Part shown: positions 32,017-49,793 of the stretch, one piece after another
How the letters are laid out: every line of letters starts with the position of its first letter
Numbering within the stretch: position 1 is the stretch's first letter
Position numbers and translations under genes: made by a program
Notes under the pieces: model-generated
What the model was told of the DNA's origin: nothing
The model's input: only the letters and a program-made list of their open reading frames with translations
Databases searched by the model: none
Assembly: GCA_965637545.1 (NCBI GenBank)
Contig: OZ281497.1
Span: 15,376,001-15,440,000, forward strand
DNA: 64,000 nucleotides
Reading direction: 5' to 3'
DNA from: Phallusia mammillata
Lineage: Eukaryota

Positions 32017-35000
32017 ATGTTTGCTGACAGTAACTGTGCGAACGAAGCGTTGTGGTCGGACAGGTCAAGAGCGTCGAGAAGATATTCACCTTATTCTCCT
32101 CGGTCACCTTTGCCGCAAGTATGTCTTTTTGGGGGGTTGATTGACACAATGCAAGTTCCTAAAAAATCGAGTAACACGAACTTTTATCGTTTTTGTAGGT
32201 TTTGTCCGCAGAACACGAAAACTCTTCAACAGACTCCTCCGAAGAACTTCACTTTAGACAAGGTAATTTGCATTCGTAAATTCTTTGCTCTAACGAAATT
32301 ATTCGTTTGTTTATGTTTAAATCTTGTATTTGCACAGGTGCAGAAATTCGACGTAGCGAAACAACACAAAAACCGAACCATTCTCGGTCGCCCTTGTTCG
32401 AGGTGAGAAGACCTAAATAGTATAAAATAAAATAAAAATTGATTTGATATTTTATTTCGCCATAATTTGTTCGATTAGACATCGGAGCGAAAAACCAGCG
32501 TAGAATCACGGAGCGACGCGGCGAGTCAGAATAACCAAAACTGTGGCGGCGAAATAGGAAACGCTTCGAGTCCGGTAATGGAAGAAGCTCACGGCCTTGC
32601 AGCCCCTGCACTTCCGTCATCACTTTCCTCAGCGGTGAACCAAGGAGCCCAACTTCGCAGGGGTGAGTGCCTTAAATGCGCTTTAGTGCGCTCTACTTTA
32701 TTCGCGAACTGTCTATTGCCTTCTGAGTCGCTGCAAATTGCAAGTTGCAGTTGTGGCACATTTGCCGGCAATGAGTGTTTTGTACCGCTTCACTGCTGAC
32801 ACTCGACCTACCTGTACGTATCGGCCATCGCTCACAACATAATACACGTGTTTGTGCACTTGACAGCAGTTCTACCGTGGCTCGCTGCTTCCAAGGACCC
32901 GGCGTCTATCTTTTCCGGCAAAGAGTACGACTCGATGTTTGGACGATCGCCAGCCAACGCCTCTGACGAGAGCATTGACTTCGAGGCAGAACAAAGTAGT
33001 TTTCGAAACGACAGCAACGATTCAAAACAGTAGGTTTTTGTTGCCGCAATAAAATCTTGATTTAATTTAGCTTATAGTGAAATAAGAAGTTAATTTAGAC
33101 GTTTTCTTTCATAGCAATCTTCAACGTCATATTAGACAGCAGCATTTGGGAGCAAGAGCACATTCTTGCCCTGAATGTGGAAAAACGTTTGCCACCTCCA
33201 GTGGGTTAAAACAACACCAACATATTCACAGCTCAGTTAAACCTTTTACCTGCGAAGTCTGCCACAAGTCTTACACACAGGTAAAAACTTGTACAGTTTT
33301 AATGTAACTTACACGAACTGTAGCTTTTCCATGCAGTTATACGCATAAAAAGTGACTTTTAATTTTTGTATAAAAACGTAATGCTTTCATACTCGGCATT
33401 AATTTAATAAACTTATTTTATACTTCCAGTTCAGTAACCTTTGTCGACACAAGAGAATGCATGCTGACTGCAGGACGCAGATTAAATGCCGCAACTGCAA
33501 CCAGCTGTTCCCAAATTCCAGTTCACTTAACAAACACCGGAGATTTTGCGAAAGCAAAGCTTTTTATCCGAATGGGTAAGCTGCTTAGTTAAGTCACGTA
33601 CATTGCATTAGGAAGTTTTTTTTTTTCAACAATTCCACATGCAATATGTTTAAAATAATTTTAACAGACTTTCGGCAATGGGCGGAGGTGATGACAGCAG
33701 AAACAATCCTCTCGAACGAATGCAACAATCTGTGTTTGCTCAAGGTAGGTTGTCTTGAATTATTATTGTGTCGTATATATATATGTAGCATTTACAAGTA
33801 CATCGCCTGTAACTGATGGTATTTTTGTATTTTCCAGGTAATATGCAGCATGTTACCCAGCACAGCTCCATGTTTCCAACATCTTTGCCTGGAAGCAGTC
33901 TGTGGACTTCAACACATAACGATAAGCTTCAAGGCAACATTCATCCGCTTAACCAATTGTCGTTGGCTCACTTGGCTCAAAACCCAACAGCTAGCAGTCT
34001 AAGCATGCTCAGTGCCATGATGCCTCAAAATGATGTTCTTCACAAACCGATATCATTGTCTTCACATTCTTATGCCAACGGCCAGTCAGTGGGCAAAACT
34101 GCCCGTTCGTCCATGGCTCATGCACAAATTCAATGCTGCAATCCCACTACCGATAACGCTTCCACTATTCCCGAAAAAGGAAATGGTCAATTTCCATTTG
34201 TTCTTGATGCCAACTCTAACAACTTTATTAGTGTTCCCAGCACACTTCTCTGCAGTACGCCGGGAAGCAGTGTTGGTGTACAAGTGGATCTTCTTGGAGT
34301 CAACCAATCACATGGTAGGAATCAACGCAGGCACGTTCCGAACTTTGAGGTTCCCGCTTCAGTCGAACTAAGTCGTGACAGCTCTTACAGCGTTGGTAAC
34401 CGGGATAACAAATCGTGGTCTCGCACACCCTCTCCTGCGTTACAGCGCAACAAGTTTTCAACTGATGAGGCTTCCACAAAGGAACAAAACACACTGCAAG
34501 AGATCAGATCTTCTTCTTCAGATGAGGATTCGTCATCGGAACGCAGGGAAATCAAAACCACACGAAGAAATATTTGGCATCCTCTTTTGTCACCAACTTC
34601 ACCGCGTCCAAATGGTAATAGTAAACGAGAAGAGAGACCAGTTTTGGACCACAGCGTTTCATACCCGGATGAAACGCCGTTCCCGTTTCCAGCTTATTCT
34701 CCATACAAAGCCAATATGTTCTATCCATACTCTGTTGCCCTGGCTGCTGCGCACGCTTACCTCCAGCGACAGAATGCAGAAGACAACAAACCTACTGCGG
34801 GAGGATCTGTCGATGCTGAAGATAACGAAGTCCGAACAAACACGATGCCACATCAAAAACACAAACCCAGGGAGACGACGCCCCTGGATCTGTCTAAACC
34901 AAAGGATGATTTTGCCGAACTTTCCTCTCCAGAAGATCAGGTATTTGGTGCGGATGTCAAGGAGAGTCAAAGTTCTCCCGGATACGACCGCTTCCAATCT

Positions 35001-47100: not shown

Positions 47101-49793
47101 ATCCCAACCGCAGCGATTTGTCAAGAAAATTATCCGATTAATTGCCTAATTCGCATAATTGCCTAAAATCTTGGCAACTTGTTTTTGTCACAGGTATTTA
47201 CTATATGAACGGAATTTACCAAAACGTTTTAACTTCTAGTTAACTATTCTGAATACGTTTATTTCTTAATTACAGTACAGCAATCTGTGTCGCCACAAAC
47301 GCATGCACTCAGACTGTCGGGGCCAGATAAGATGTCGCACCTGTCGTCAACTATTTCCCAATGCAAACTCGCTCAACAAACACCGACGCTTCTGCTCAGT
47401 ACACAGTCGCACTAGCATGTCGAACAGGTAAGTTTACAAGCTTATTTTGTAGTTGATATACGTCTTTGGTAAAATTAACCGTAGCTTACATACAATGCTC
47501 ATTTATTACTTCATAATATGCAACAAATTTCGTTCGCTCAACAATTTGCCTACATGACATATACGGATATTTTTAACGTTTTATTCTTGTCGTGGTTATA
47601 ACCAACCACATGATTAGAATGGGCGTTAAAAGAGTGCTTTTCTTTTTCTATTTTTCTGGAGCATGAATCGCACTGAAAATGTCAGACTGCTGTCTACATT
47701 CCCTAATGGCTAATTTTTGTTTTAGCTTGATTCATCACAGAGCGAACGAAACATCATACGGACTGAACACTTCAATACCACAAAAAACTGACATCTACAA
47801 ACAAGGTAATTGACTATCTGGGTTTTTCTCCAAACTTGCATCTTCTTATTCATTTTACAAACGGCGTTTACTAATCTAACAATCTATTTACAGAAAGCAA
47901 CAACGTACTGACAATGCGGTCACCGTTACCTGGCAGCAACTTACCTCTGAATTCATCTTCAGTTTTCCAAGTTCCACCTGGGCCGCGATCGCCACCATTT
48001 TCTCCTCTTCTTACTTGTTTTTCTAACAACAAATTCTACCAGGTCTCTTCCCAAATTCCTTTTGCGCACAAGATTGCAAACTTACGCAACACACTGCCAA
48101 AAATGGCCGATGCCGCAATTCAGTGTTCAGATCCTGGCGCAGAATCTTTTCTTGCTTCCTTCGATCAGGTAATGACCCAGATCAATGCCGATTCACGAAG
48201 ATTTCGAAGTGCCTCTTCATGCGCTACCTACAGCCGCCAATCAGTAAGTCATGCCAGTGTTCAAGTCGATCTAAGCAATGAAAAGCTCGCACTTACTTCG
48301 CACAAGAGTTCAACCGTCGCACGGGAAATGCAAAATGAACCACAGCAGACCAGAGAGAAAATTTGGAATCCTATTTTGTCACCGTCGAGCAGTCAGCAAA
48401 AAAATATTGAAATGCGCAATAATTCTGCAGCGGAGGCAGTCGCTGCCGCCATCTTGTATCACAGCACGCTGGAAAAGCGAGCAGCGGCACAAACTGTGGC
48501 CAACCGTCCAAACGTATTTCCTGTCAAAGGCACATCTCAATCATTTCAGCAACAAACAACGATCTCAGACCAACCTCTCGATCTTTCTTTGCCCAAAAAG
48601 TGTGAAACTGCAAGCTGCACAATCAACAACAATGTAGCAGCATGGAGAAACCCGCTAAACCTCTATTATCATTTTGGAAAACGCTTTGGCAGCACTTCAC
48701 TTCTCGCCAACCAACGGGCAAGGCATGCTTCTATACAAAATGACCGAATCTCACGGTTTGGTGCGTTTCCTTGGTACCTACGACAGCCATACGGACAGCT
48801 CTATTCCAACATTAACACCCAACTATCTTCTTTCGGTAGTTTGTATGCTCAGCAGCCTTCTTCGGTTGCGATGCCCTCACCTTTTTTGGGCCGCGATCAG
48901 TTGTCTCCGACCGGCAGTAACAAATCGTTTCAAGGGGTAAAGGAGCGTTACACTTGCAAGTTTTGTCGAAAAGTTTTTCCAAGGAGCGCTAACCTGACCA
49001 GACACGAAAGAACACATACTGGCGAGCAACCATACACCTGCACATTCTGTGAGCGAAGTTTTTCCATCTCATCAAATCTCCAGCGCCACATCCGAAACAT
49101 CCACAGAAAGGTACGTTTTGAACGCAACGACCAGTTTCATGCACAATTTTCATTTGATGGCTATAATTAAAACTTGTTTTCTACTCATAGCTTAAATAGT
49201 TTCCTAAAATGTTTTTCTACTATTTTTACAGGAGCGGCCTTATCCATGCCATCTTTGTGGCCGAGCATTCGGACAACAAACCAACCTTGACCGACATTTG
49301 AGAAACCACGAAAAATACAGCTGGTAAGCAAATGTTTTGAATAAAATATTTGTCTATAAAAACCGACAAAAGATAGTGAAGTCGCCTTCCTGCTGCCACA
49401 GTTGGTTAAGTGGTGTTCAAGATTTTTTTTTCTTTTCTTACTCTGCATTTCTTTTGCAGTGTGCGCGAACCCAACTACTCCTACGAAAACGAACAATCGC
49501 CTAATGGCCGCCACCCAAGTGCACCTACAAGCGCTTTCAACGCAACAGACCTGTTCCGGCGAATGTCCAACTCTTCGATGGACTCCAGCTTAAGTAGTGG
49601 GAGTGGTCTTTCAAGAAACAGCAGCTTCAATGAATCGGGCCACCACGACGAGCGAATGAGTAGTGGCGAGTCCGAATGCGATCCGTTTTGTGTCTCGTCG
49701 GTCACTACCAGTCCAGTTGCCTTGACCGATGACAGCATGAGGAGACTGGTGCGAGGGGCTACGGCTGGCCAGACCGCCACAATACAGGGATAA
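44111..49793 (+). CDS. Prdm3/16: Prdm3/16 (MECOM/EVI1-PRDM16-like) C2H2 zinc-finger transcription factor, copy B; no PR/SET domain found; ~850 aa; first exon tentative
   Basis: Exons 44111-44152 (tentative), 45727-45861, 45948-46059, 46164-46344, 46778-46985, 47276-47427, 47726-47805, 47894-49110, 49232-49323, 49460-49793. Fingers [94 protein letters not shown]. Motif DQPLDLS. Confidence 0.9.

Follow-up and report, generated by a model that had tools for sequence, protein, structure and literature searches.

Two Prdm3/16-like genes on either side of ATPAF1

This study analyzed a window of 64,000 nucleotides on a chromosome-scale contig (C4) of Phallusia mammillata, which carries two Prdm3/16-family genes, here called A and B, both on the + strand (Table 1). 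Single exons or database proteins were used for the searches, and exons were joined for the match check and the codon statistics. The product of gene A corresponds to UniProt A0A6F9DKQ4 ("Zinc finger protein LOC723797") and that of gene B to A0A6F9DSR3 ("Zinc finger protein"); compared with these entries, the spliced translations show 7 differences over the 1216 residues of A and 3 over the 850 of B, and all introns are GT-AG. Footprinting with tblastx and blastn against another ascidian yielded nothing usable for the N-terminal exons of gene B, and these exons were placed from A0A6F9DSR3. The giant-exon layout proposed for gene B in an earlier note was retained, but an additional first coding exon of 42 nt, starting at 44111, was needed.

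Table 1. Features of the Phallusia locus, in positions of the window. A slash in a motif marks an intron.
Feature	Position	Strand	Description
Gene A, A-type Prdm3/16-like	32017-36795	+	1216 aa; 12 coding exons including stop codon; ATG at 32017
A exon 1	32017-32118	+	102 nt, phase 0-0; start Met and conserved 18-residue motif
A exons 2-5	32199-32262, 32338-32402, 32479-32662, 32867-33029	+
A exon 6	33115-33280	+	helix half of finger 4, finger 5, first half of finger 6; ends TQ/
A exon 7	33430-33575	+	second half of finger 6 (11 residues), finger 7
A exon 8	33668-33744	+	77 nt, phase 2 to 1
A exon 9 (giant)	33838-35876	+	2039 nt
A exon 9, AHAQIQC	34116-34136	+
A exon 9, IWHPLLSP	34572-34595	+
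A exon 9, PLDLS	34881-34895	+	CtBP-type motif; A residues 671-675
A exon 9, fingers 8 and 9	35721-35870	+
A exon 10	35954-36048	+	finger 10, 3' of K/ERPY intron
A exons 11-12	36118-36242, 36371-36792	+
ATPAF1	38850-40206	+	ATP11 family F1-ATPase assembly factor; detectable coding exons only, as exon ORFs, the last ending at 40206
Gene B, B-type Prdm3/16-like	44111-49793	+	850 aa; 10 coding exons including stop codon; last base of TAA at 49793
B exon 1	44111-44152	+	42 nt, start Met; in-frame stop 31 codons upstream
B exon 2	45727-45861	+	135 nt, phase 0-0; 17-residue motif; homologous to A exon 1
B exons 3-4	45948-46059, 46164-46344	+
B exon 5	46778-46985	+	finger 4 (intact) and finger 5, plus first half of finger 6; ends TQ/
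B exon 6	47276-47427	+	second half of finger 6 (11 residues), finger 7
B exon 7	47726-47805	+	80 nt, phase 2 to 1
B exon 8 (giant)	47894-49110	+	1217 nt
B exon 8, ADAAIQC	48106-48126	+
B exon 8, IWNPILSP	48361-48384	+
B exon 8, PLDLS	48574-48588	+	B residues 531-535
B exon 8, fingers 8 and 9	48955-49104	+
B exon 9	49232-49323	+	finger 10, 3' of K/ERPY intron
B exon 10	49460-49790	+

Three exon matches to PF06644 (ATP11) were identified between the two genes and on the same strand (39342-40143; E values of 1.3e-10, 7e-9, and 2e-3), the best of which scored 47.9 bits (cut-off 22) and places the intervening gene in the ATP11/ATPAF1 family. With both gene models rebuilt and these matches lying in between, the earlier observation of two same-strand EVI1/PRDM16-like genes around ATPAF1 is confirmed. 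The linkage of ATPAF1 to the B-type gene recurs in a second ascidian, in which ATPAF1 lies upstream of that gene on the same strand. The A-type contig of this species shows no ATPAF1 in its 21 kb of downstream sequence and does not overlap the contig carrying ATPAF1 and the B-type gene, both contigs ending first; this does not count against a linkage of the A-type gene to ATPAF1.

A genome-wide tally returned only two intact copies and one decayed fragment. The fragment, a 650-bp DNA-level match to gene A at C4:16.40 Mb, was rejected as a third gene.

Shared architecture and divergence of the two genes

The exon architecture that had been read as common to the pair was recovered in every element. 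The N-terminal phase 0-0 exons encode a W..RAS..(Y/F)xPYS motif (8 of 15 residues identical by BLASTP, E 0.002), and the motif of A is also found in B-type proteins. Both genes have a phase 2 intron 5' of the finger-4 exon, phase 0 introns at TQ/FSNL (A) or TQ/YSNL (B) and at K/ERPY, an exon that begins in phase 2 and ends in phase 1 (77 nt in A, 80 nt in B), and a finger-10 exon that ends in phase 2 (95 nt in A, 92 nt in B). Their products have fingers 5-10, the PLDLS motif, and the short N-terminal motif in common. Six fingers are intact in A (5-10) and seven in B (4-10): both genes lack fingers 1-3, as had been claimed, but they differ at finger 4, which is intact in B and has lost its Cys half in A. 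The acceptor AG of A exon 6 lies within the old Ser codon, and B exon 5 is longer than this exon by 42 nt.

The finger domains of A and B are approximately 80% identical in protein sequence. Identity across the finger blocks is 0.79-0.82, 0.86-0.92, and 0.41 at the first, second, and third codon positions, respectively; dN is approximately 0.15, and saturation of the synonymous sites leaves the NG86 dS undefined. These values bear out the proposal that the pair is old and its third codon positions largely diverged. Judged by branch lengths in the tree, the rate of evolution is higher in B than in A.

Alternatively, an assembly error, duplicated haplotypes, or a pseudogene in decay might account for one copy or for the pair, a reading that can appeal to the capacity of uncollapsed haplotypes to yield tandem same-strand copies and to the faster evolution of B. 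We consider it extremely improbable, in line with the earlier note, and it is already refuted by the A/B divergence and by the orthologues of each copy. Synonymous sites are saturated, the products measure 1216 and 850 aa, and the exon numbers differ; neither reading frame is broken, and each corresponds to a database protein of its own; and other ascidians have orthologues of both types in which the fingers are intact. The true decayed fragment at 16.40 Mb, by comparison, has lost Cys residues and carries a frameshift, unlike either gene.

Family membership and absence of the PR domain

Fingers 5-7 are 86-91% identical to those of vertebrate or arthropod Prdm3/16 proteins and fingers 8-9 are 92% identical, the latter value holding for A against ferret PRDM16; the best named database matches were MECOM, PRDM16, and hamlet. 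Among the hallmarks of the family, we found fingers 4-7 with a C2HC finger 7 (4-7 in B; 5-7 and half of 4 in A), the distal cluster of three fingers (8-10), a PLDLS-type predicted CtBP-binding motif between the clusters of both proteins, and a position within the family in the tree. The N-terminal PR (SET-like) domain (PF21549) and fingers 1-3 of the seven-finger proximal C2H2 cluster were found in neither gene.

Several searches addressed these absences. Pfam scans of six tunicate proteins, from four species and of both types, revealed no PR or SET domain, and A, B, Ciona intestinalis Q1RPZ5, and both Clavelina proteins contained C2H2 fingers only. No fingers were present in the N-termini of A- and B-type proteins, which are short in three species per type. 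A Prdm3/16 PR profile had no match on either strand of 264 kb (200 kb upstream plus the window), and tblastn with the PR domain and fingers 1-3 of the ferret, bear, louse, and barnacle proteins found nothing upstream in the same 264 kb, matching only the known fingers of A and B as cross-hits. A search of the whole assembly, which scored only the candidates from a loose first look, found no Prdm3/16-type PR domain; all significant PR matches lay on contig C2 and were PRDM9-like or PRDM4/10-like, and the one that best fitted the Prdm3/16 profile was PRDM4/10-like. An NCBIfam scan gave no matches, as expected because that library is prokaryote-centred. The claim that both genes lack the PR domain and fingers 1-3 thus withstood the Pfam, profile, tblastn, and genome searches.

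A and B could also be ordinary Prdm3/16 genes whose PR exons and fingers 1-3 escaped detection because they are far upstream, unassembled, or too diverged, the database proteins being short isoforms. In vertebrates, only a subset of MECOM transcripts includes the PR exons, which are located far upstream (over 200 kb for mammalian MDS1). Given the shortness of PR exons, one that is strongly diverged or more than 200 kb distant could be missed, and the genome search was confined to its first-look candidates. The Phallusia frame 5' of the A ATG is, moreover, open for 32 codons. In the second ascidian (locus L016), however, this ATG is conserved and is preceded by an in-frame stop 14 codons upstream, and similarity to A exon 1 begins only after the Met, with the Met and the motif conserved. 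Unrelated ORFs lie upstream in Phallusia, one of them (10.5-11.7 kb) glutathione-synthetase-like. Together with the silence of the 264 kb on both strands, the location and type of the significant PR matches, and the PR-less tunicate proteins of both types, these findings make missed exons unlikely. Because no PR domain of the Prdm3/16 type was detected in either copy or in the genome as searched, the short, "oncogenic-type" form appears to be the only Prdm3/16 form that the Phallusia genome can make.

We also considered whether the lost PR domain survives as a vestige in the shared N-terminal exon (W..R.RAS..(Y/F)xPY), whose counterpart could be the "GIW...RFGPY" strand region or the "SWLKYIRxA" motif. 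If so, the genes arose by erosion of a PR isoform rather than by fixation of an internal-promoter isoform, and the remnant may still serve a PR-associated contact. An hhalign comparison of the N-terminal motif alignment with the PR alignment gave a probability of 2.9% (P 0.015). In hmmsearch with a 30-sequence PR profile, tunicate N-termini scored near 0 bits, shuffled sequences did equally well or better in 2-24% of cases, and the N-terminus of Phallusia A had no match. The two programs disagreed on where in the PR domain the motif would fall. The vestige reading was not supported and is improbable.

Orthologues and origin of the duplication

Orthologues of both types, all PR-less, were identified in Ciona, Clavelina, and ascidian contigs from metagenome samples. 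They include Ciona intestinalis Q1RPZ5 and a 936-aa protein of Clavelina lepadiformis for the B type, and Clavelina LOC143459796 and Ciona savignyi H2YQJ0 for the A type. The Ciona and Clavelina proteins resemble A and B in their N-terminal motifs, finger sets, lack of a PR domain, and clade membership. Finger 4 is intact in the A-type proteins of Clavelina and C. savignyi, whereas it is lost in Phallusia A and in the A-type gene of L016. In the databases, the Ciona and Clavelina orthologues are named only "zinc finger protein" or are uncharacterised. No account of these genes turned up in literature searches on MECOM, EVI1, or PRDM16 in Ciona.

Under a site-heterogeneous model, the tree supported the tunicate A clade (95/98), the tunicate B clade (100/99), and their union (100/100), with several ascidians in each clade. 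Gnathostome MECOM and PRDM16 formed a separate clade (94/97) that was sister to the tunicate clade (89/96), and protostome homologues fell outside. The presence of A and B orthologues in several ascidians, and the position of A and B as sister clades apart from MECOM+PRDM16, indicate that the duplication is tunicate-specific and old, as the earlier note had anticipated for a pair arising independently of MECOM/PRDM16.

This tree is built on long tunicate branches and contains no amphioxus, ambulacrarian, stolidobranch, or appendicularian rows; its hagfish rows are misplaced beside a long-branched spider row, and the program warned of long branches joining within the B clade. Long-branch attraction and convergent losses might therefore hide an older pair, or orthology of A and B to the two vertebrate genes. 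We regard this as quite improbable: the support values for A+B and for MECOM+PRDM16 stand against it, and A and B share the N-terminal motif exon, the loss of the PR domain and fingers 1-3, and their tandem position. Vervoort et al. (PMC4760075), moreover, assign the separation of MECOM from PRDM16 to the gnathostome stem. The text of that 2016 paper counts six Prdm subfamilies as lost in ascidians and names none of them.

Proposed history and comparison with known systems

The interpretation of A and B as a PR-less, independently duplicated pair is largely supported. We assign a probability of roughly 0.8 to the reading that they are two functional PR-less Prdm3/16 paralogues, descended from one PR-less tunicate ancestor and duplicated independently of vertebrates, with an EVI1-like action that we infer. 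The single ancestral gene, already devoid of the PR domain and fingers 1-3 and with a short N-terminus bearing the motif, would have been duplicated ahead of the divergence of the Phallusia, Ciona, and Clavelina lineages. A is long, evolves slowly, and is without finger 4 in the Phallusia lineage; B is short, evolves fast, and retains this finger. The proximal fingers (5-7, with finger 4 added in B) and distal fingers 8-10 are predicted to bind DNA, and PLDLS to recruit CtBP-type co-repressors in both proteins; the two would probably act as CtBP-recruiting repressors, in the manner of vertebrate EVI1 or short PRDM16, and no methyltransferase-type isoform would oppose them. The differences in length, rate, and finger 4 suggest different DNA specificity or roles, and subfunctionalisation may have followed the duplication.

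Tunicates form the sister group to vertebrates, in which MECOM and PRDM16 each make PR and PR-less forms thought to act in opposition, and EVI1, which lacks the PR domain, drives leukaemia. Should tunicates have no other genes of this family than two PR-less ones, they would constitute a natural "EVI1-only" chordate that can show the roles of the fingers and CtBP without a methyltransferase-type domain. The pair, differing in length and rate and with finger 4 lost in one member, would offer a clean test case of subfunctionalisation, and its duplication would parallel the vertebrate one despite being independent of it. Surveys based on the PR domain would miss tunicate Prdm3/16 genes and might wrongly score a loss in ascidians.

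Both proteins resemble vertebrate EVI1 and short PRDM16 in lacking the PR domain, in their orthologous fingers 5-7 and 8-10 (86-92%), in the PLDLS motif between the finger clusters, in the long central exon, and in their place in the same family of the tree. They differ in that EVI1 and short PRDM16 are isoforms of genes that produce a PR form as well, and retain fingers 1-3, whereas in the tunicate proteins these fingers are gone, finger 4 of A is lost, and the N-terminal motif is tunicate-specific. Gnathostome MECOM/PRDM16, Drosophila Hamlet, and the mollusc and crustacean homologues have the same two finger clusters as A and B, but these full-length proteins carry PF21549/PF00856 PR domains that the tunicate proteins lack. 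Caenorhabditis elegans EGL-43 is another invertebrate EVI1 relative, in which no recognisable PR domain is known. It belongs to a different phylum from tunicates and represents an independent event. Vervoort et al. (PMC4760075) count Prdm3/16 as lost in rhabditine nematodes.

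Gene models of the two paralogues and ATPAF1

The window lies at 15376001-15440000 of contig C4. To define exons, database proteins were mapped to it and GT-AG junctions were then searched for by script. A word search matched the 747-aa ORF of gene A to a 99% identical Phallusia mammillata protein, and the spliced translation of the gene differed by 7 residues from its database protein P0001 (UniProt A0A6F9DKQ4, CAB3263719.1, "zinc finger protein LOC723797"). For gene B, an exhaustive search of representative proteins retrieved P0137 (A0A6F9DSR3, CAB3266497.1, "zinc finger protein"), from which the spliced translation differed by 3 residues. 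Because they fit canonical splice sites exactly, P0001 and P0137 represent spliced models of the two loci. The earlier note had placed ATPAF1 between A and B, and Pfam ATP11 matches on the same strand as both genes were indeed found there. Its exon layout of B was correct for the exons shared with A, but the 42-nt first coding exon had been overlooked.

Coordinates of the paralogues and associated features (window positions, except where contig C4 is named)
Feature	Position	Strand	Description
Gene A	32017-36795	+	12 coding exons, 1216 aa
ATPAF1	39342-40143	+	three Pfam ATP11 matches
ATPAF1, further exon-like ORFs	~38850 to stop at 40206	+	ORFs
Gene B	44111-49793	+	10 coding exons, 850 aa
B exon 1, first coding exon	44111-44152	+	42 nt
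Third match (L047/L048)	C4:16398380-16399033	minus	~1 Mb downstream of the window

Shared architecture, divergence and copy number

The spliced models revealed that A and B share intron positions and phases, as the earlier note had proposed. Both carry a phase-2 intron preceding the finger-4 exon, a phase-0 intron within finger 6 (TQ|FSNL in A, TQ|YSNL in B), a small phase 2 to 1 exon ahead of the giant exon (77 nt in A, 80 nt in B), and a phase-0 K|ERPY intron ahead of finger 10. Exon 1 of A (102 nt) and exon 2 of B (135 nt) are both phase 0-0 and encode an N-terminal motif, W..R.RAS..(Y/F)xPY, with 8 of 15 residues identical (E 0.002 for the pair); other ascidians conserve this motif in their A-type and B-type proteins. 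Protein identity over the two finger blocks is 79-81%; third codon positions are 41% identical, and the same codon is used in just 37-39% of conserved residues. The NG86 dN of the finger blocks is approximately 0.15, and saturation leaves dS undefined, in keeping with the proposed extensive divergence at third positions.

Finger 4 is intact in B. Exon 6 of A, 42 nt shorter than exon 5 of B, starts within the former finger 4, such that A retains the helix half alone. In the A-type gene of a second ascidian (locus L016), the finger-4 region is even more degenerate than in Phallusia A. Finger 4 persists in A-type proteins from Clavelina, Ciona savignyi and another ascidian locus (L017), which confines its loss to the Phallusia side.

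When the genome was searched with fingers 4-7 and with fingers 8-10, no intact high-identity copies other than A and B emerged. A third match of approximately 650 bp is 76-86% identical in DNA, introns included, to window positions 35718-36413, and extends from late exon 9 of gene A through exons 10-11 into early exon 12. Its zinc-binding Cys residues are lost and its frame is broken; we rejected it as a third gene and regard it as a pseudogene fragment, a segmental copy, now decayed, of the 3' portion of A.

A-type and B-type contigs are both present in ENA sample ERZ27241785. On the B-type contig, exons of ATPAF1 precede the finger-4 exon of B by approximately 14 kb on the same strand, indicating that the ATPAF1-B adjacency is conserved. 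The synteny check in another ascidian thus bore out this half of the arrangement; the stretch from A to ATPAF1 lies beyond the reach of the contigs.

Absence of the PR domain and fingers 1-3

A Pfam scan of A, B, Ciona intestinalis Q1RPZ5 and both Clavelina lepadiformis proteins detected C2H2 families alone and no PR domain; the same scan detected PF21549 and PF00856 in ferret PRDM16. The window and the 200 kb upstream of it (264 kb) were searched in six frames with a profile built from Prdm3/16 PR domains (alignment A1), and no PR signal was obtained, the top score of 9.6 bits (E 0.57) being noise. In tblastn searches with the PR domain and fingers 1-3 of ferret, bear, salmon louse and barnacle, only cross-matches to known fingers appeared.

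Genome-wide, significant PF21549 matches were confined to contig C2, where an exon at 20.14 Mb was the top match for both the ferret PR domain and the A1 profile. This exon was rejected as a Prdm3/16 PR exon, since it matched PRDM4 and PRDM10 structures (E 5e-12 and 6e-10) far better than PRDM16 and MECOM (E 1e-3 and 0.1). Three further C2 loci, at 3.97, 4.93 and 5.93 Mb (L001, L002, L004), appear PRDM9-like by eye and are very alike; in each, a C2H2 array follows the PR domain. Similar zinc-finger ORFs form large arrays near them on C2 (~5.9-7.3 Mb) and on C3.

In locus L016, a Met opens A-type exon 1, a stop lies 14 codons ahead of it, and similarity to Phallusia is seen only beyond that Met. 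In Phallusia, Ciona and Clavelina alike, the B-type protein starts 35-40 residues ahead of the shared motif. A PR exon could exist and have been missed, as PR exons are short and the genome-wide search scores first-look candidates only; set beside the Pfam, 264-kb and genome-wide results, we consider this quite improbable. The earlier proposal that A and B lack the PR domain and fingers 1-3 accordingly stands, at the sensitivity used.

Age and independence of the duplication

Word searches identified the tunicate relatives Ciona intestinalis Q1RPZ5, a Clavelina protein of 936 aa, Clavelina LOC143459796 and C. savignyi H2YQJ0; contigs from metagenome samples added single-exon proteins of further ascidians. 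A tree of 31 rows and 895 columns (IQ-TREE, LG+C20 PMSF), built without amphioxus, ambulacrarian, stolidobranch, thaliacean or appendicularian rows, recovered an A-type clade (95/98) and a B-type clade (100/99) as sisters (A+B 100/100), apart from gnathostome MECOM+PRDM16 (94/97), with tunicates beside gnathostomes (89/96). Both hagfish rows are wrongly placed next to a long spider branch, and long branches meet inside the B clade (treekit warning). These groupings and the saturated dS agree with the suggested old duplication independent of MECOM/PRDM16. A single duplication, postdating the loss of PR and fingers 1-3, is supported by the N-terminal exon and the losses that both genes have in common. 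A and B form a genuine tandem pair that is old and restricted to tunicates.

Surroundings in the window

A single intronless 399-aa frame at 10547-11743 (minus) resembles eukaryotic glutathione synthetase by eye. No convincing coding exon was found at 12000-32000, approximately 20 kb upstream of A, and G+C is 0.43-0.48 at 20-30 kb of the window versus 0.35-0.40 elsewhere; this stretch could be regulatory DNA or repeats. Positions 43264-43403, approximately 0.7 kb upstream of the first coding exon of B, are weakly conserved non-coding sequence relative to positions 473-621 of a stretch from another ascidian (L012; 33 nt at 82%, E 0.009) and could be a promoter or 5' UTR element. Downstream of B, ORFs at 52657-54753 (minus) combine a B-box-like Cys/His pattern with coiled-coil-like sequence and point to a putative TRIM-like gene.

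Family status and predicted function

In the text of Vervoort et al. (2016; PMC4760075), ascidians are stated to have lost 6 of 11 ancestral Prdm subfamilies and the MECOM/PRDM16 split is dated to the gnathostome stem; that text does not specify the status of Prdm3/16 among the ascidian losses. Only two PRDM genes were found in Ciona (Fumasoni et al. 2007). No published description of these genes emerged from literature searches for MECOM, EVI1 or PRDM16 in Ciona; the A and B proteins are already in databases, but merely as "zinc finger protein". A and B are Prdm3/16 by descent, yet they lack the PR domain that gives the family its name.

Both proteins keep the conserved blocks AHAQIQC/ADAAIQC and IWHPLLSP/IWNPILSP. 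The finger-4 loss of A, the finger substitutions of B and the lengths of 1216 versus 850 aa suggest, at the level of sequence, that specificity or partners may have diverged. A and B would act as sequence-specific EVI1-type repressors with no opposing PR isoform. PLDLS is the canonical CtBP-binding motif of EVI1; A and B likewise carry PLDLS between their finger clusters and differ from EVI1 in having no detected PR isoform.
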